Shown here one piece after another: positions 12,450 through 58,329 of a stretch of 64,000 nt of DNA. Location: positions 14,446,001 to 14,510,000 of the forward strand of contig NC_043018.1 of assembly GCF_006345805.1 (NCBI RefSeq), written 5' to 3'. The stretch is from Octopus sinensis. Lineage: Eukaryota. A program made the position numbers and the translations under genes. The notes beneath the pieces are model-generated. The model made no database searches and was not told the origin of the DNA. It was given only the letters and a program-made list of their open reading frames with translations. Within the stretch, counting starts at the first letter, position 1, and each line of letters starts with the position of its first letter.

Positions 12450-14130
<1,681 letters not shown>

Positions 14131-21630: not shown

Positions 21631-22492
21631 TAGTAGATTCCAGTAGAAGCAAAGCAAGATGGCCAGTGTGGCCTCTCGTAAACTTGAAGAGAGAAAGCTC
21701 AATGAATACAGGGTTGGTCATCTGAAGCCCCTATCAGTTTCTGCCGGTCACCGTCGAGATCTCATGAGTTCTCGGATCCCGTACTACCGATTTCGTCCCC
21801 AACAGAGGGATGAAGACCTACCCCTCGGATAAATGAGCCGCATGAAGTCGACTGTGTGCTGCAGCAAGTGTTACCTACCATCACAGTCATCACCGTGGAG
21901 CGCGGCTGAACACACCTATTGATCTCGTGAATGTGGGCCATCGGCCCTCCCCTCTATCTTCTACTGCTTTACTGCACCCTTTTCGCTATCTCTCTTTTCC
22001 TTTCTTATCACTCTTCTTTCCTATTTCTTTGTATTTAATTGTTATAAAATACAACTTGGACAATAATGTTCTTTTACAAATATATATTGTGACATTGCAA
22101 TGTAAAATCTTAACATCCATATCCATAACTTAAAGGCAAACACCACAGCGAAGAACGAAGCACTGAGATTTTCTTACCGTTTCAATAACTTAAAATCAAA
22201 GAGCACAGCGAATAACGAAACACTAAGTACTTGCGATGCTTTAATATTTTTATTTCATTGGAATTTCATTAAAATTTGATGGATTAATAGCATAAATATA
22301 TTAGATATTAAATACATTCGTCGTATTAATTTAGGTTTGTTAGAAGACTTATAGTTGTAGATTATGGTTTGCAGATTTTCTCTTCTTTTACCATTCCAGT
22401 TCTTGGTGCAACGCACGTGAATTTCTCTCCAGGATAAATTACAGAATCAAACTTCTGCTCGTTAATACTTTATATTTCAGTGTTCCATGAAA

Positions 22493-22498
22493 TTTATT
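22493..22498 (-). terminator. Poly(A) signal after exon C
   Basis: Conserved AATAAA context on the minus strand. Confidence 0.6.
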
Positions 22499-22528
22499 CG
22501 TAGTTTTCTACTGTTATAGGATATAAAA

Positions 22529-22576
<48 letters not shown>

Positions 22577-22694
22577 TAGTAGTAGTTGTAGTAGTAACAA
22601 CAACAGGTAAAGCAGAGTTACAAGAATTGACACAGCATCAGTTACAGCCCCTTGTTGATGTTCTTCTTGTAGTTGAGTGTACTTTTGCAGAACG

Positions 22695-22926
22695 TCAATA
22701 AAATGGTAAATTTACAAGAAAAATCAGAAAAGCCATTACAGTTTGGAGTATACCAGCATTCGTCACACGGCTCATATTCTTAGGATTACAATAGCAGAAC
22801 AGGAAATTGTTACATTCACATTTCCTATCTGGGCAGCAAGGAGGCGGTGGCGAAAAATCCGTCGTAGTCCCACAGCGTCCCACTGCACATATATTAACAA
22901 CATCACCAGATCTCTTAATTTTGTCC
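22695..22926 (-). CDS. Alternative terminal exon C: 8-Cys knottin core plus GPI-like tail
   Basis: ttctttttcccag|G, phase 2; DKIKRSGDVVNICAVGRCGTTTDFSPPPPCCPDRKCECNNFLFCYCNPKNMSRVTNAGILQTVMAFLIFLVNLPFY*. Confidence 0.85.
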
Positions 22927-24920
22927 CTGGGAAAAAGAATATAGTTGGAAGTTAAAAAAATTAATTAAATTATGTTTTCTCATTTAGGGAGAAAGCAAGC
23001 AAATTTTAAGAGGAGGGATTAGTTGAAGCTCATGTTTTGTTATTATCAACGTCGATTGAAGTATAGATTCTGATGCAATTTGAACTCATAACATGCAGAA
23101 CCGAAATCAGTACCAGTCATATTTTTCTGTTCTTTTAATGATTGCTAAATGTATTTCCTCAACTTTCTCAACTATTACGAAAATATAATTAAAAATCCGG
23201 ATTGTATATGGCGTTGAAAAAATAAAGAATGAGTTGAAGTGTCGCCTGTTGGTAGTCGGAAGTGATGTCCGTGAATACATGACTTTAGCCCTGCTTCGTT
23301 TAAAGTCCTAAACCTGCAACAAAGGGCACCAAAATGGCGACGTGATATTCGAAGCTTGCATCTGCCAGTCTATCGTGTGTGGTGGGTGGATCTTCAAGTT
23401 ACCACACGCATTCTTAATAGCTTAGAGTACGGCTCGAATTAGAGATTGTTCTTTGTGGCTAATGGCGTGAGTCCTGATTGGAAGAAGAAGCGGAAGAAGA
23501 AGAAGAAGAAGAAGAAGAAGGCAGCAGCTGCATCAGCAACAACAACAACACTGTTTGCTGGAATTAAGGTTGAAGAAGTCTGAAAGTACTCCAGGGTTGT
23601 TCATGCCGGACGCCGTTGCGAATTCGATTGGAGAGTTCGTTTATAATTACGAAGGTATTACATTCTCTGCAAATTTTCGATCACTTTGCCTTTCATCCTT
23701 TCGGGGTCGATAAATGAAGTACCAGTTGCGTACTGAGATCGATCTAATTGACTAACCGCCTCCCCAAACATTTCGGGCCTTGTACCAAGAGTCGAAAAGA
23801 ATATCACTCTGTAGAAGGAAGCAGTTAAGATATCGTAAAATACCGGTGAAAATATATATTCTTTTATTCTTGAAAGGTTTCCGTCATTTCACTAGCACCA
23901 GGTTAAAAGGTTTTAGTCGGAGAAATCGATCCCAGATCTTAGTTGTTGAAGACTAGTACTTATTCTTTCGGACTCTTGTGCTGAATCACCATTTACGAGG
24001 TCGTACACACACCAACACCGGTTGGCTGTGTAGCAGTGGTGGTGGGGGACAAATTCACACACACACACACACACTCACATTGTTGTATTATTTCAATTAT
24101 TTCACTCATTTTGACAGTAGCGACTTTTAATCGAAGAACTCGACCCCTTCACCCATTCTTTGTAAGCCTGGGACTTATTCAATCAGTCTCTTTACAACAC
24201 ATAGTCATACCTACGCCAATATGTGTATATACATACATACAGCATACATACATACATACATACATACATTACATATACATACATACATACATACATACAT
24301 ACATACGTTTCTGTGTCTGCTTTGGCAGTTATGCAGATAAACGAATTCTATATCCCGAAAAGATTCCAATGAACAATCAAAATGAACATTGCTGCATCTC
24401 TCCTGAAATAACTACAAAATCGTGGTTGTTTTAGCTGCACTACATCAATACTCTTTGATACTCGTACACTCTTCTTTCCTGTTTCTTTGTATTCATTTGT
24501 TATAAAATACAACTTGGACAATAATGTTCTTTTACAAATTCATATTGTGATACTGCAATGGAAAATGTTACTACCCATATCCATAACTTAAAGGCAAACA
24601 CCACAGCGAAGAACGAAGCACTGAGATTTTGTTTCTTTCAATAACTTAAAATCAAAGAGCACAGCAAATAACGAAGCACTAAATATTTGTCACGGTGTAA
24701 TAAATTTATTTAATTGTAATTTCATTCAAATTTGACGGATACGATCGTGCTATTAATTTCGGTTTGTTAGAAAACTCATAGTTGTAGATTATGGTTTGCA
24801 GATTTTCTCTTCTTTTACCATTTTCAGTTCTTGGTGCAACGCACGTGAATTCCTCTCCAGGATATATTACAGAATCAAACTTCTGCTCGATAATACTTTA
24901 TATTTCACTGTTTCATGAAA

Positions 24921-24926
24921 TTTATT
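24921..24926 (-). terminator. Poly(A) signal after exon D
   Basis: Conserved AATAAA context on the minus strand. Confidence 0.6.
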
Positions 24927-24995
24927 CGTAGTTTTCTATTGTTATAGGATATAAAATAGTAGTAGTAGTAGTAGTAGTAGTAAGTAGTAGTCAGT

Positions 24996-25033
<38 letters not shown>

Positions 25034-25145
25034 TAGTACTAGTAGTAACAACAACAGGTAAAGCAGAGTTACAAGAATTGAAACAGCATCGGTTACAACC
25101 CTTTGTTGATGTTCTTCTTGTAGTTGAGTGTACTTTTGCAGAACG

Positions 25146-25353
25146 TCAATAAGATGGTAAATTTACAAGAAAAATCAGAAAAGCCATTACAGCTTGCAGT
25201 ATACCGGTATTCGTCACATGGATCATAGTCTGAGAATTACAAAAGCAGGTCAGGTCAGTGTTACATTGACATCTCCATTTTCCGCAGCAAGCATTATTTG
25301 GTTTACAGGGTCCATCTACACATATAATTGAAGCAATATGCTGACGTTTGACC
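25146..25353 (-). CDS. Alternative terminal exon D: 8-Cys knottin core plus GPI-like tail
   Basis: ttttttccag|G, phase 2; VKRQHIASIICVDGPCKPNNACCGKWRCQCNTDLTCFCNSQTMIHVTNTGILQAVMAFLIFLVNLPSY*. With exon 2 it creates an R-V-K-R furin-type site. Confidence 0.85.
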
Positions 25354-37924: not shown

Positions 37925-38970
37925 AGAAAATACCTGAAAGAGGTACCTGGATGACTGTTTCATTCTTTGGCATGAAAATATAGAGAAACTTAAAGAATTC
38001 CAAGCACTTTTAAATGGACTTGACGTAAACATTCAATTTACAATGGAATGTAGCCAGCAACAACTTCCCTTCCTCGACATCCTCATTTAGAAATCTAACA
38101 ACATAATAGAAACAGATATATACTATAAGCCTACGGAATCCAAGCGATATCTACCGTTCAACACATGCAAACCCAGACACACCAGAATGAATATCCCATT
38201 CAACCTACCAAAAAGGATATGTACTATAGTTTCTAATGCAAACACCAGAGATATACGACTACATGAACTAAAGGATACACTCATCCCCAAGAACAACCCA
38301 TCTTCACTAATTGACATATACTTTCAACGTGTCCTTCAACTCAACATCCCAAATCAAAGAAGGATTTACAACCAAAAGCCCTACCTTGCATCCCCAAACA
38401 CAACTCTCTCAACAATGAAGCCTTCGACACCATCCTCCAAAATATTTTCCTGCTAAAAAAGGACCACAGAATGAACTTAATCCTCCAAACACACACGATC
38501 ATAAAACGCAAGAGGCAGCCTAAATCTATGAAAAGTCTCCTAACACAAGCCCGAATATGCTTAACAACACAGAAGCCGTCAGTAAAAAATGCGGGAGACT
38601 CAACTGTGGGATATGCGTCAATTTAATTGCGGGATCACAGTTCTCCTTCAAACAGGGACACGTTTCACTGTGAAAAGCAATTTCACTTGTGCTTCAGAGA
38701 ACCTGATATACGCACTAACCTGCTCTGGGTGTCAAGAGCAATACATAAGCCAAAAAAAAAAACAGTCTAGAAAAATAGCATTCAGCCAACACATAGACAT
38801 TTGCGCCAATAACAAAAATCCAAGCTTCAGAGTTTTTCCCCTCTACCAATTCAGGGACGATACAACCTGTAGCCAACGAATTAGTAAAGATATTCTCTTT
38901 ATTACAAAATACAGACCCCTTTTGAATGCATCTACAAGAAACGACTTATCCACAACGGCCTTAGAATAAC
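37925..38970 (+). mobile_element. Decayed Penelope-like element (RT plus GIY-YIG)
   Basis: RYLDDCFILW...IQFTME...LPFLDI...TDIYYKPT; downstream FTCASENLIYALTCSGCQEQYI. Confidence 0.85.
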
Positions 38971-44190: not shown

Positions 44191-46789
44191 TGTGGAGTGA
44201 ATTTTAGGGCTTATAAAACTAATATCTTCCTATCCCTCCTTAATACTTGTTCCCATAGGCTATTCATATCTGCACTCGGTCTGCTTAGGAGATTGTTGTG
44301 TCCTAGCATCTGTGCTGCTTCTATTAGTTTTCGTATTTTCCAATGGTGTTCTCTGTCTATCATTTCAGCTTCATCCCACAGGGGGAGGTGGTCTCCATTT
44401 TTCTATACATGATCAGCTATACCCGATTCTACCAGCTCGCCGGTTTTATATGGAAAAAATACTGAAAAACGTCAGCACATCAGAGTGACAAAGAAACTAG
44501 GGAGGTATCAGGTGGTCGTGAGATGTGCGAAAAATAACAGCTAAATAGCTCTTAAAGCACACAGCTTTTGCTCGTTGGTTGAATTCTCGTGTGTAGAATA
44601 TGTATTTGGAAAAATTTTCTGAAAATTCCGGAAAAAACAAAACAAACCCCAGATATTAATTGTAAGTTGTAATGATGCAGAAGAAATACCAGAAATAAAG
44701 ATTTCCTGTGTTTCAAATAAAATCCGTTCCATTTCTTCAGTACACGATATTTACTTTTCGTTTCAGTATTTCAAGTGCACACTCCTATTTTTATACATTC
44801 CACATGTATTTAACTAAATTGTGAAATTTATATGTCAGAAATAAAGAGAAATCTTATCTAAAGAAGGGATTGAATCGACGTTAACAAATAATTTAGAAAA
44901 ATAACCAAAAGTGCAGTGAAATGTCTAAAAGAAAACGACAACACAATGAAAGTATTGACATAACAGCTTAACTTTCATATAATTTCGTCTTTGTTTTGTG
45001 AGATTCTTTTAATTCAACTCATCGAAACAATTAGACGTATTTGATATGACACGTATAAAATAGAAATGTCTAAATAAATACTTATACAGAGGAGTGGCTG
45101 TGTGGTAAGTAGCTTGCTAACCAGCCACATGGTTCCGGGTTCAGTCCCACTGCGTGGCATCTCGGGCAAGTGTCTTCTGCTATAGCCTCGGGCCGACCAA
45201 TGCCTTGTGAGTGGATTTGGTAGACGAAAACTGAAAGAAGCCCGTCGTATATATGTATATATATATATATGTGTGTGTGTGTCTGTGTTTGTCCCCCTAG
45301 CATTGCTTGACAACCGGTGCTGGTGTGTTTACGTCCCCGTCACTTAGTGGTTCGGCAAAAGAGACCGATAGAATAAGTACTGGGCTTACAAAGAATAAGT
45401 CCCGGGGTCGATTTGCTCGACTAAAAGGCGGTGCTCCAGCATGGCCGTAGTCAAATGACAGAAACAAGTAAAAGAGTAAAGAGTAATAGATATAGAGAGA
45501 AAGAGTGAACGAGGAAGATGTGAGAACTGAAGCCAGAGTGGAGAACGACAGCTTCAAGAGAATTTCTAGATTTCTACGAAAAAATATTAATTCATATTTT
45601 TCAGGTCAACATAATAAAAAATGCTGCGACATTTATTTACCAATCATTTATGTATTTGATTTGATTTTTCTCTTGAATATCAGTTGTATAAAGTGGAACT
45701 GATCAAGCAATCAAGGTGCGTGAGAAACAGGAGCAAGAAACAAAATTAGGAAGAATTTAATTAGGAACAAGGGGAGCTAACTCTAGTCTTTAAACAATTG
45801 CGGCTCTACTTTATTTTTTTACTTTTACTTGTTTCAGTCATTTGACTGCGGCCATGCTGGAGCACCGCCTTTAGTCGAGCAAATTGACCCCGGGACTTAT
45901 TCTTTGTAAGCCCAGTACTTATTCTATCGGGGTTCTTTTGCCGAACCGCTAGGTGACGGGGATGTAAACACACCAGCATCGGTTGTCAAGCAATACTAGG
46001 GGACAAACACAGAAACACAAACACATACATATATACGACAGGCTTCTTTCAGTTTCCGTCTACCAAATCCACTCACAAGGCATTGGTTGGCCCGGGGCTA
46101 TAGCAGAAGACACTTGCCCAAGATGCCACACAGTGGGACTGAACCCGGAACCATGTGGTTGGTTAGCAAGCTACTTACCACACAGCCACTCCTGCTATTT
46201 GGTATATTTTGGTATTCTTCCTTATTAATCCCTATTATCGTCATTATCACCAACCCTGCTGGATCCTTTCTGGTTGGGTGCACGTAGGGAAATTTTAATA
46301 TTTGGCCTGTACAATATATATCCTATTTATGCACATTTTCAAATAATTTCAGGGAGGTGGGGTTCCAGCTTCCTACCCCATCCTTTTTTTTTTTCAAAGA
46401 AAAATAAGGGGTTCGCGACACATTAGGAGGTCAGGGTAAGTGATTTGACGCAAGAAATCCAAGGGTTTTTTTTTTTTACGGGTGGCACGTAAAAAGCACC
46501 CACTACACTCACGGAGTGGTTGGCATTAGGAAGGGCATCCAGCCGTAGAAACATTGCCAGATAAGACCGGAGCCTGGTGCAGCCTTCTGGCTTCCCAGAT
46601 CCCCGGTCGAACCATCCAACTAGCATGGAGAACGGACGTTAAACGATGATGATGATGATGATGAACTGCATGGAGGTGCACTTGTAAAAATTTATCCGAA
46701 TGGTTTCATAATTATGGTGTTGAATATCGTTTCACGGTAGAAAAACGTTATGGGTGACTGAACATCAAGAACCAATTCTCCAGTGTCCT

Positions 46790-56997: not shown

Positions 56998-57304
56998 CTG
57001 AAGAAGACAAAACGGAAAAAAAAGAAAAAAATCAACATCATTATGATTATATAACAACAACAACAACAACAACAACAACGAATCTCCGGTTAACAAAATA
57101 TTTTCAGTCTACATCACAATATCGTATACTAGAGGCGCAGGAGTGGCTGTCTGGTAAGTAGCTTGCTAACCAACCACATGGTTCTGGGTTCAGTCCCACT
57201 GAGTGGCATCTTGGCCAAGTGTCTTCTGCTATAGCCCTGGGCCGACCAATGCCTTGTGAGTGGATTTGGTAGACGGAAACTGAAAGAAGCCTGTCGTATA
57301 TATG

Positions 57305-57339
<35 letters not shown>

Positions 57340-58329
57340 ATCTGTGTTTGTCCCCCTAGCATTGCTTGACAACCGATGCTGGTGTGTTTACGTCCCCGTC
57401 ACTTAGCGGTTCGGCAAAAAGAGACTGATAGAATAAGTACTGGGCTTACAAAGAATAAGTCCCGGGTCGATTTGCTCGACTAAAGGTGGTGCTCCAGCAT
57501 GGCCGCAGTCAAATGACTGAAACAAGTAAAAGAGTAAAGAGTAAAAGAGTATATGATAGAGGACATGAAACAATATAAAAGAAAAAGCAAACAAATTTGT
57601 AGACCAAATTCCCAGCAGCTCCAAAATAAGTGAATTGCAAAAAAAAAAATCTTTCTAACAAATGCCTCAAATATTTTACATAAATTCCTCTCCAGGTAAA
57701 TAAATCTTAGTCATTCAGTTGTATTATAAATTTTATAGAATGATTTTGTTTCTCTTAATAACACACAAATGTCAATTTTATCAGTTGCATGGTGTCACAC
57801 CTGTTTGTATCTTTAGGTGTAAAATCCTGTCCCTTGGTGTCCCTGATTGAGACTTGGGTGCAGCTTGTATAAATTAAAGCAAAAGCAGAACATGATTATA
57901 ATAAGCAAACTTTAGGTTAATTAAAATATGTTTGTGACATATTTCAACTTCTAAAGGCAAATTCACTTATGGCAAAAATGTGTAAAAACAATATATCTGT
58001 CCAGCGCTGTCCCCTGTTAGATTCTCAGATGTGTTTCTAGCCCTTTAGCCATTATCAATGGGAAATTTCGACGAGAGACAACTCTGGACAGACTTACAGC
58101 TGTAGCTTTAACTAAAACACAGTCATCAACATTGACTAAGTTGTGCCATTAGACTACTAAGTCATAAAAAATTACTACAGTATCAGTGCCAAGCAGTTTT
58201 TAGGCATAAGCTAAAGTTTGTGACTTCAACTAATCTAAAGTTCACTCATGCCTAAACACTGCTCGGCACTGATGCACAACAATAATAATAATAATAATAA
58301 TAACAATAAGCTTGGAACTTAAAGAATAC

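Follow-up and report, generated by a model that had tools for sequence, protein, structure and literature searches.

Does a family of small, cysteine-rich octopus proteins end in a signal for attachment of a glycosylphosphatidylinositol (GPI) anchor? The question is raised by a hydrophobic C-terminus that is encoded on the minus strand at positions 25146-25240 of a 64,000-nucleotide (nt) stretch of the Octopus sinensis genome (NCBI RefSeq assembly GCF_006345805.1, contig NC_043018.1, positions 14,446,001 to 14,510,000). This whole stretch is called the window hereafter, and positions are those of the window unless another locus is named. The original prediction, made from the letters of the window, had noticed in five exons encoding knottins, i.e. 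peptides of the inhibitor cystine knot (ICK) type, a common tail of this kind, and had proposed on this basis that the products could be natural tethered toxins. According to our analysis, the region 25146-25240 closes the last of the three coding exons of a gene that belongs to a tandem, octopus-restricted family with precursors of ~110 amino acids (aa).

A genuine, frame-protected hydrophobic C-terminus

Searching the whole window by tblastn with the peptide of the exon in question, named exon D, revealed five intact terminal exons (A, B, C, D and E) and one decayed copy (Table 1). Every intact terminal exon encodes, in this order, a Lys-Arg (KR) processing site, a core containing eight cysteines, a polar linker of 12 residues and an uncharged hydrophobic C-terminus of 18 residues. 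The interval 25146-25240 corresponds exactly to linker, tail and stop codon of exon D. The two linker types that had been described are indeed present, namely KNMSRVTNAG in A, C and E and SQTMIH[V/M]TNTG in B and D, each followed by the tail; the uniform reading of the tail start as ILQTVM does not extend to D, which reads ILQAVM. The consensus of the intact copies is ILQ[T/A]VM[A/V]FLIFLVNLP[S/F]Y, followed by the stop codon.

Across the family, the tail comprises 16-23 residues with 0-1 charged residues and a Kyte-Doolittle value of 1.5-2.1, and nothing is found C-terminal of it. It forms the C-terminus in 14/14 family members, and divergent members retain a hydrophobic end despite changed last codons (...SILSSLAILY in P0004; ...LVNLHLIDVLFL in P0005, Ob9). 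Two features are invariant: the third residue of the hydrophobic run is a Gln, and an Asn precedes the run by 1-2 residues. Between the invariant Gln and an Asn of the tail there are ~10 consecutive apolar residues. Stable transmembrane helices usually need a longer stretch, and one of this length fits a GPI signal better.

Insertions and deletions reveal how this end has been maintained. Linker, tail and stop codon, together 93 nt, contain 0 indel blocks in 10 sequences, as compared to 36 blocks in 300 nt of 3' untranslated region (UTR), 29 of which are not multiples of three, and 26 blocks in 130 nt of intron in the same sequences. At the UTR rate, ~11 indel blocks would be expected for 93 nt (Poisson P ~1e-5). 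In the region comprising pro-sequence and core, 7/7 indels are multiples of 3. The sequence of the linker drifts while its frame and length are kept, and no stop codon precedes the tail in any intact member. Maintenance of frame and length of linker and tail despite the drift of the linker indicates that the tail is translated and wanted. Thus, the hydrophobic C-terminus is genuine and frame-protected.

The terminal exons are preceded by a signal exon and a propeptide exon. Exon 1 of the minus-strand gene encodes a predicted endoplasmic reticulum (ER) signal peptide, MKGISVLLFCAFISYTFS followed by an Asp. The peptide is kept by all relatives, and its exon is joined to the next without a shift of frame; the start of its product agrees with the Octopus bimaculoides proteins P0001-P0007. 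Joining of exons 1 and 2 to E, D or C yields in-frame open reading frames (ORFs) of 118, 110 and 118 codons, respectively. In the case of D, whose acceptor is of phase 2 (TATATTTTTTTCCAG/G, the slash marking the splice site) and lies behind a pyrimidine tract and CAG, the spliced coding sequence measures 333 nt and remains in frame, the exon itself being translated as (G)VKRQHIASIICVDGPCKPNNACCGKWRCQCNTDLTCFCNSQTMIHVTNTGILQAVMAFLIFLVNLPSY up to the stop codon. The signal peptide that belongs to the attachment pattern invoked for the knottins is thereby located, together with a pro-exon and intact spliced frames. Moreover, the three-exon model is independently validated, as RefSeq proteins of O. 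bimaculoides share signal peptide, pro-region, KR site, Cys residues and tail. Direct splicing of exon 1 to exon 3 through a weak AA/GTAGAA donor was considered and dropped, since the 61-nt middle exon restores the frame, has strong splice sites and matches the RefSeq proteins.

Along 22009-29963(-), E, D and C each possess their own acceptor, tail and AATAAA and follow, at ~2.8-kb spacing, a single pair of signal and pro-exon. No signal exon was found between C, D and E when the window was searched, and exons C and E encode identical protein sequences. E, D and C may be alternative last exons; if not, they arose very recently by duplication of the exon alone. An AATAAA is present ~200-220 nt downstream of each terminal exon, within a conserved block. 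The plus-strand gene mirrors this layout: paralogues of the signal exon (7165) and of the pro-exon (near 9057) are followed by the decayed exon and finally by B. The upstream exons of A, including its signal exon, are located outside the window. Loci in O. bimaculoides are arranged likewise, e.g. with a terminal exon (L001 22022-22120) that immediately precedes the annotated last one.

To find relatives, a profile of the window peptides was compared with 1.84 billion representatives, which retrieved five proteins (E 1e-21 to 1e-5), the match always being C-terminal. Two further searches brought the family to ~9 proteins, all of them listed as O. bimaculoides 'uncharacterized protein LOC1282505xx'. 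These are the only relatives in public databases; the family is octopus-restricted and previously uncharacterised. A word-index protein search with the exon peptide alone gave no match, and neither did an exact look-up of the window's spliced proteins and of a gag-like ORF (see below) in the protein collection. The O. bimaculoides members are encoded on CM046622.1 (GCA_001194135.2) at 29.17-29.25 Mb and 36.38 Mb. Their proteins agree with those of the window in signal peptide, pro-region and KR site as well as in the eight Cys residues and the tail, and the precursor with exon D shares 58% identity over its full length with XP_052831635 (P0001), the window precursors measuring 110-118 aa. At the level of loci, identity between the window and O. 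bimaculoides is 76-94%, in patches only, and the O. bimaculoides loci hold extra, unannotated terminal exons in tandem, one of which is decayed. The literature was found to contain no mention of these sequences or LOC numbers, and an Rfam scan gave no match.

What does the tail carry? Eight Cys residues are invariant in all 13 intact cores (C-x4-x10-C-x5-7-CC-x4-C-x-C-x4-8-C-x-C), and their spacing follows the knottin pattern of at least six Cys in the order C-C-CC-C-C within a domain of ~30-40 residues. The best Pfam match, Toxin_9 (12.6 bits; cut-off 21.3), and a match to Toxin_7 (11.3 bits; cut-off 27) were both sub-threshold, and a Pfam search with the full-length precursor gave no match. 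No match was obtained to the UPAR_LY6 domain of Pfam, and the Cys spacing is of the knottin rather than the LU type, the latter being characterised by 8-10 Cys and a C-terminal CN motif. Sequence search of the PDB returned only insignificant matches to knottins or a carboxypeptidase inhibitor. AlphaFold2, supplied with the small family alignment, modelled a beta-hairpin core with a predicted local distance difference test (pLDDT) score of ~70-79, the overall pLDDT being 66-68. In the model of the full exon, the tail forms a separate helix of 20 residues, and the linker has a pLDDT of <50. Foldseek comparison with the PDB matched almost exclusively ICK peptides, with a best E-value of 0.39. The top matches were J-atracotoxin-Hv1c (1dl0; probability 0.90) and ACTX-Hi:OB4219 (1kqh; probability 0.80), with template modelling (TM) scores of ~0.6 and root-mean-square deviations of 1.5-2.3 A, followed by agatoxins, psalmotoxin and lobes of the double-knot toxin. 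The modelled similarity of fold is short of significance, and 'knottin-like' is therefore the best description of the core.

Conservation of the tail at the nucleotide level

How is the tail conserved? The five window copies belong to duplicated units of ~2.8 kb, with 88-96% identity between units in introns and 3' flanks. The 40 nt past the stop codon are identical in 5/5 copies, and the Cys core is the one place where alignment of the units fails. Among the window copies, four sites of the tail vary (one synonymous, three non-synonymous), and the 3'UTR next to it is better conserved. Since the copies are recent duplicates, conservation of the tail within the window is uninformative, and it becomes informative only when the O. 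bimaculoides paralogues are included. The linker types are discordant with the similarity of the cores, A being nearest to D (1554-1598, 11353-11397, 22752-22796, 25203-25247, 28087-28131), which shows the copies to be mosaics and implies recombination or gene conversion. Directly after CGTTCTGC, the 3'UTRs of A-E lack a block of ~85-130 nt, which is carried by the decayed copy (10455-10538) and all O. bimaculoides relatives; this shared absence identifies A-E as one recent expansion. We also considered that the decayed copy could represent an ancestral, tail-less form stopping right after the knot, the tail being former UTR. A gap-poor alignment shows a degraded ordinary exon, and the decayed copy thus provides no evidence on the origin of the tail.

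To compare rates, we determined mean pairwise nucleotide differences for 10 terminal exons of the same length, of which the window contributes four and O. bimaculoides six. The values are 0.35 for the intron, 0.43 for the pro/KR region and 0.40 for the core, and decrease to 0.25 in the linker, 0.08 in the hydrophobic tail and 0.016 in the stop codon plus the first 11 nt of the UTR, before rising again to 0.24-0.31 in the remaining UTR. Hence, the tail is far more conserved than the core, as had been noticed from the window. The further step from this conservation to a functional peptide signal does not hold in this form. Variable columns in the tail (14/54) are evenly distributed over codon positions 1, 2 and 3 (5, 5 and 4 of 18 each). 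With 63% of UTR columns and 79% of intron columns being variable, binomial P values for the third positions of the tail are 6e-4 (UTR background) and 5e-7 (intron background). For pooled pairs, the proportions of synonymous (pS) and non-synonymous (pN) differences are 0.049 and 0.092 in the tail and 0.28 and 0.24 in the linker. Codon positions are thus flat, pN is at least as high as pS, and conservation spans the stop codon. The tail is a nucleotide-level conservation island across the stop codon and not a case of ordinary purifying selection at the protein level.

Near-invariance extends over the stop codon plus 11 nt (TGACGTTCTGC, 25135-25148 in D) in all paralogues of both gene clusters, only 1/14 columns being variable. 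Within the tail DNA, TTGTAAATTT is similar to a UGUAAAU motif of the Pumilio type. The island of tail and stop codon was also examined for a conserved RNA hairpin, which was rejected (four invariant pairs, -1.3 kcal/mol, no covariation), and no inverted-repeat partner was found near the island. Read-through or editing of the stop codon was likewise discarded, since B and C have no open frame beyond the stop codon, although A and D do.

A splice site inside the tail may account for part of this pattern. The RefSeq model of isoform X2 of LOC128250541 (P0009) uses a donor within the tail (..AILQT/GTAAGC), which removes the tail. The isoform continues with a small exon ~530 nt downstream, and a hydrophilic end replaces the hydrophobic one (L005 17145-17213(-), 17739-17840(-)). 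The internal GT is present in 12/13 copies, the window copies reading ACT/GTAATG or GCT/GTAATG. At the position matching the downstream acceptor of isoform X2, AG is missing in units A, B and C and kept in D (~24520). Given the internal GT and an AG in some of the units, tail-less soluble isoforms are possible for some members, for which lynx1 and SLURP-2 provide a parallel of tethered versus secreted forms (PMC4971505). Part of the nucleotide conservation of the tail may serve splicing. Production of tandem knottins by splicing the internal donor to the exon of the next unit was dismissed, as the junction is out of frame.

Freezing at the nucleotide level is not confined to the tail. In the signal exon, 21/64 columns are variable (6, 6 and 8 by codon position), whereas 55-64% of columns vary in its flanks; the 12 nt upstream of the ATG (atcaggtgcgtg) are also conserved. 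In the 13 exons, the Cys codons are position-specific in the order TGT TGT TGC TGC TGT TGT TGC TGT, with 5 deviations in 104 codons. Their third positions differ by 0.097, while 79% of the surrounding third positions are variable. The non-Cys codons of the core have a pN of 0.62 and a pS of 0.49, and recent pairs likewise show a pN exceeding pS in the core (A-D, 0 synonymous and 4 non-synonymous differences; Ob1-Ob2, ratio 2.4). Nucleotide-frozen Cys codons around a fast-evolving core are a signature described for conotoxin genes (PMC3823881). Indeed, our data show that the family evolves like cone-snail toxin genes, with signal exon, Cys codons and tail frozen at the nucleotide level. Conopeptide superfamilies, e.g. 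the O-superfamily knottins, are also molluscan and share the three-exon layout of signal, pro- and mature region, the KR pro-site, the conserved signal beside a hypervariable mature peptide and the position-specific Cys codons (PMC3823881). However, they are devoid of a conserved hydrophobic C-terminal tail, and the octopus family has several terminal exons per pair of signal and pro-exon. Comparison of the conotoxin families of Pfam with the family peptides yielded no detectable homology. The likeness to the Conus superfamilies is one of working principle, without detected homology.

Possible membrane attachment and competing explanations

Could the tail serve as a GPI signal? According to the NetGPI and PredGPI papers, such a signal consists of a polar linker (omega-10..-1), a small residue (S, N, D, G, A or C) at the attachment site omega, mostly G, A or S at omega+2, a moderately polar spacer (omega+3..+9) and a hydrophobic tail extending from ~omega+10 to the end. 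The attachment pattern ascribed to the octopus exons is recovered in part: linker, N and G residues and uncharged end are present, but a polar spacer is absent after N-x-G and the omega triplet is missing in 5/14 members. Ten polar residues separate the last Cys from the Asn of N-x-G, which fits a GPI linker. An N at omega with a G at omega+2 occurs in 5/5 window copies (N-A-G, N-T-G), and N-x-G (or D-N-A) is found in 9-10 of the 14 family members. In A, C and E only, the alternative omega site N-M-S, with a spacer of 6 residues and a tail of 18, conforms to textbook geometry; this site is 4 residues away from the knot and also represents an N-glycosylation sequon. Omega triplet and spacer aside, the uncharged hydrophobic stretch reaching to the C-terminus agrees with a GPI signal in all members.

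On these sequence features, we tentatively read the tail as a C-terminal membrane-attachment signal, with GPI as the most economical mechanism, and give this reading not quite an even chance. The precursor would enter the ER and be held in the membrane by its hydrophobic end. Cleavage by GPI transamidase at the Asn of N-[A/T/N]-G, or alternatively at the N-M-S site of A, C and E, would then transfer the knottin to the GPI lipid. As a result, the variable knot would be displayed on the surface of the producing cell via a linker of ~10 residues.

Several observations weigh against a GPI signal. In the five members without the omega triplet (AFNG, AHNG, ATNG and, twice, THNS), omega+2 would be Ile, Leu or Met. 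If omega is the N of N-x-G, the hydrophobic run begins at omega+3, the spacer ILQTVMA is mostly apolar rather than polar, and 11 residues are left from omega+10 onwards in a propeptide of only 20 residues, which is an atypical geometry. The invariant Gln and the position-by-position conservation of nucleotides are unlike the usual degenerate GPI signal, and conservation that acts on nucleotides is no testimony to a function of the peptide. The tail is spliced out in the RefSeq model of isoform X2 of LOC128250541. Finally, 3.3% of the stop-terminated 18-residue stretches in the AT-rich window are equally hydrophobic and uncharged; origin of the hydrophobic end by chance in a single founding event is unlikely but not negligible.

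The invariant Asn also invites a different explanation. An Asn accompanied by a small residue stands just before the run in 14/14 members (N-G, N-S, N-A, N-A-G, N-T-G), and the tail could be a C-terminal propeptide that holds or sorts the precursor in the secretory pathway and is cleaved off, e.g. after this Asn, leaving a soluble secreted knottin of the venom, antimicrobial or pheromone type. The hypervariable core, the tandem arrays and the KR pro-site are typical of secreted families resembling toxins or antimicrobial peptides (AMPs), and precursors of mollusc AMPs and conopeptides often have conserved non-mature flanks. Nonetheless, we consider a cleaved propeptide unlikely: no dibasic or other recognisable convertase site is present between knot and tail, legumain-type cleavage after Asn would be invoked by analogy only, and knottin toxins are not known to carry a hydrophobic, uncharged propeptide at the C-terminus.

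Alternatively, the tail may be retained in the mature product, either as an uncleaved anchor without a cytoplasmic part or as a membrane-inserting helix concentrating the knot on target membranes. The 20-residue helix predicted by AlphaFold2 and the lack of the omega triplet in 5/14 members are in line with retention, and the invariant Gln and the strongly conserved positions suggest a specific helix over a degenerate signal. However, the run of ~10 consecutive apolar residues has no flanking charges, and the helix is neither amphipathic nor cationic, unlike known membrane-active toxin modules. Proteins with such ends, if not GPI-processed, are usually retained and degraded, which also speaks against a retained tail, and we judge it improbable.

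The least probable explanation, in our estimate, is that a nucleic-acid element is conserved, i.e. an alternative 5' splice site and/or a regulatory element of the 3' end at the stop codon, with the tail as a by-product of T-rich DNA and a tail-less soluble isoform as the functional product: flat codon positions, pN at or above pS, a peak at the stop codon and 11 nt of UTR, the GT after ..ILQ[T/A] used in isoform X2 and the frequency of equally hydrophobic random ends all fit this explanation, but all intact members keep frame and length across the variable linker, A, B and C are without AG at the matching downstream acceptor, no conserved RNA structure was found in the island of tail and stop codon, and all other RefSeq models keep the tail.

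Should the tail act as a GPI signal, the family could be extended to a wider and rather doubtful picture of natural GPI-tethered knottins in octopuses. They would constitute a lineage-specific, hypervariable surface repertoire, in which a constant pair of signal and pro-exon is combined with one of several tandem terminal exons, each with its own anchor signal and poly(A) site, and an internal splice switch leads to soluble forms. The role of such proteins could be to modulate ion channels or receptors in cis, or to provide a diversity code at the cell surface. The function originally proposed for them, as tethered modulators, is an attractive hypothesis.

Known systems resemble this arrangement in parts. 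Spider ICK toxins (J-atracotoxin-Hv1c, ACTX-Hi:OB4219, mu- and U4-agatoxins) are the best structural matches (TM 0.6-0.65 over 31-36 residues) and have a framework of the C-C-CC-CxC-CxC type, but they are without a hydrophobic C-terminal extension. The architecture proposed here has been realised in engineered tethered toxins (t-toxins), the original design of which is said to have been based on lynx1. These t-toxins combine a signal peptide, a knottin-type toxin, a flexible linker and a GPI signal and silence channels cell-autonomously (PMC7056315). They are artificial, and we looked in the literature for a natural counterpart of knottin fold, as well as for any octopus knottin or natural GPI-anchored knottin, and found none. 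In Ly6/uPAR prototoxins such as lynx1 and Lypd6, related genes give rise to tethered as well as secreted proteins (PMC7785133, PMC8494132, PMC4971505). They differ in that they contain three-finger LU domains with 8-10 Cys in another pattern, in contrast to the knottin-like core with eight Cys, and neither sequence nor Pfam comparison revealed a relation to them. In addition, lynx genes are neither hypervariable nor tandemly amplified, unlike the octopus cores, for which GPI anchoring is a candidate mechanism only.

The natural tethered toxins found in the literature are thus three-finger Ly6 proteins only, while knottins have been tethered by design in the laboratory. Provided that the tail does serve as a GPI signal, octopuses would possess the natural counterpart of t-toxins and a diversified, ready-made library of tethered cystine knots, whose targets could be sought in the octopus nervous or sensory system. 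The anchor question aside, the evolutionary signature of cone-snail genes is present in a cephalopod. The mechanism behind this signature thereby becomes open to tests in another class of molluscs, for which genomes at chromosome level are available.

Feature coordinates and other elements of the window

The features of the family within the window are compiled in Table 1.

Table 1. Exons and sub-exonic features of the knottin-like family, with strand in brackets (slashes mark splice sites).
Feature	Position	tblastn match	Remarks
Terminal exon D	25146..25353 (-)	25149-25352	VKR, 8-Cys core, linker, tail, TGA stop
Core of D, hypervariable, knottin-like	25239..25322 (-)		C-x4-C-x5-CC-x4-C-x-C-x6-C-x-C
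Polar linker of D, 12 residues	25203..25238 (-)		NSQTMIHVTNTG; holds candidate omega triplet N-T-G
Hydrophobic C-terminus of D, 18 residues, uncharged	25149..25202 (-)		ILQAVMAFLIFLVNLPSY; helix predicted
Conservation island	25135..25202 (-)		tail, stop codon and first 11 nt of 3'UTR
AATAAA polyadenylation signal, unit D	24921..24926 (-)		~220 nt past stop; block conserved in all units
Terminal exon E	28030..28261 (-)	28033-28254	first terminal exon downstream of signal and pro-exons
Terminal exon C	22695..22926 (-)	22698-22919	recent duplicate of E
Terminal exon A	1448..1655 (+)	1449-1652	core near D; linker of C/E type
Terminal exon B	11235..11454 (+)	11251-11451	
Decayed terminal exon	~10258..10440 (+)		Cys framework lost, in-frame stop, frame broken in tail
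Exon 1, minus-strand gene	31537..31600 (-)		signal peptide MKGISVLLFCAFISYTFSDNQ; donor T/GTAAGT, phase 1
Exon 2, 61-nt propeptide exon	30523..30583 (-)		SVSPAHQQTGDHVTLSNVTGR; acceptor tctctttcag, donor AAG/GTAAGA
Signal-exon paralogue, plus-strand gene	7165..7227 (+)		frame broken relative to intact copies

Apart from the family, the window harbours mobile and repetitive elements. A 418-aa ORF at 32842-34098(-) contains a CCHC zinc knuckle (Pfam E 5e-7) and has weak matches to retroviral-type aspartyl proteases; it is the gag-protease part of a long terminal repeat (LTR) retrotransposon, situated just upstream of the minus-strand gene. A 126-aa ORF at 38589-38969(+) with ...NLIYALTCSGCQEQYISQ... 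is reminiscent of the GIY-YIG endonuclease module of Penelope-like elements, and a Pfam search with it gave no match. The first intron of the plus-strand gene includes a tandem repeat of 45 nt at 7864-8954 (24.6 copies, 94% match), which its minus-strand paralogue is without. An interspersed repeat of ~430 nt, probably a short interspersed nuclear element (SINE)-like element, occurs with 89-92% identity in intron 1 of the minus-strand gene (30848-31279) and in at least eight other places (36626-37052, 45090-45500 and 57133-57543 among them). Microsatellite and low-complexity blocks at 2829-4304, 5397-6053, 13024-13532 and 29994-30281 are composed of (AAT)n, (ATGATG)n with a higher-order unit of 63 nt, (TA)n, (ATA)n and (CATA)n, and the longest spurious ORFs of the window arise from such low-complexity blocks.

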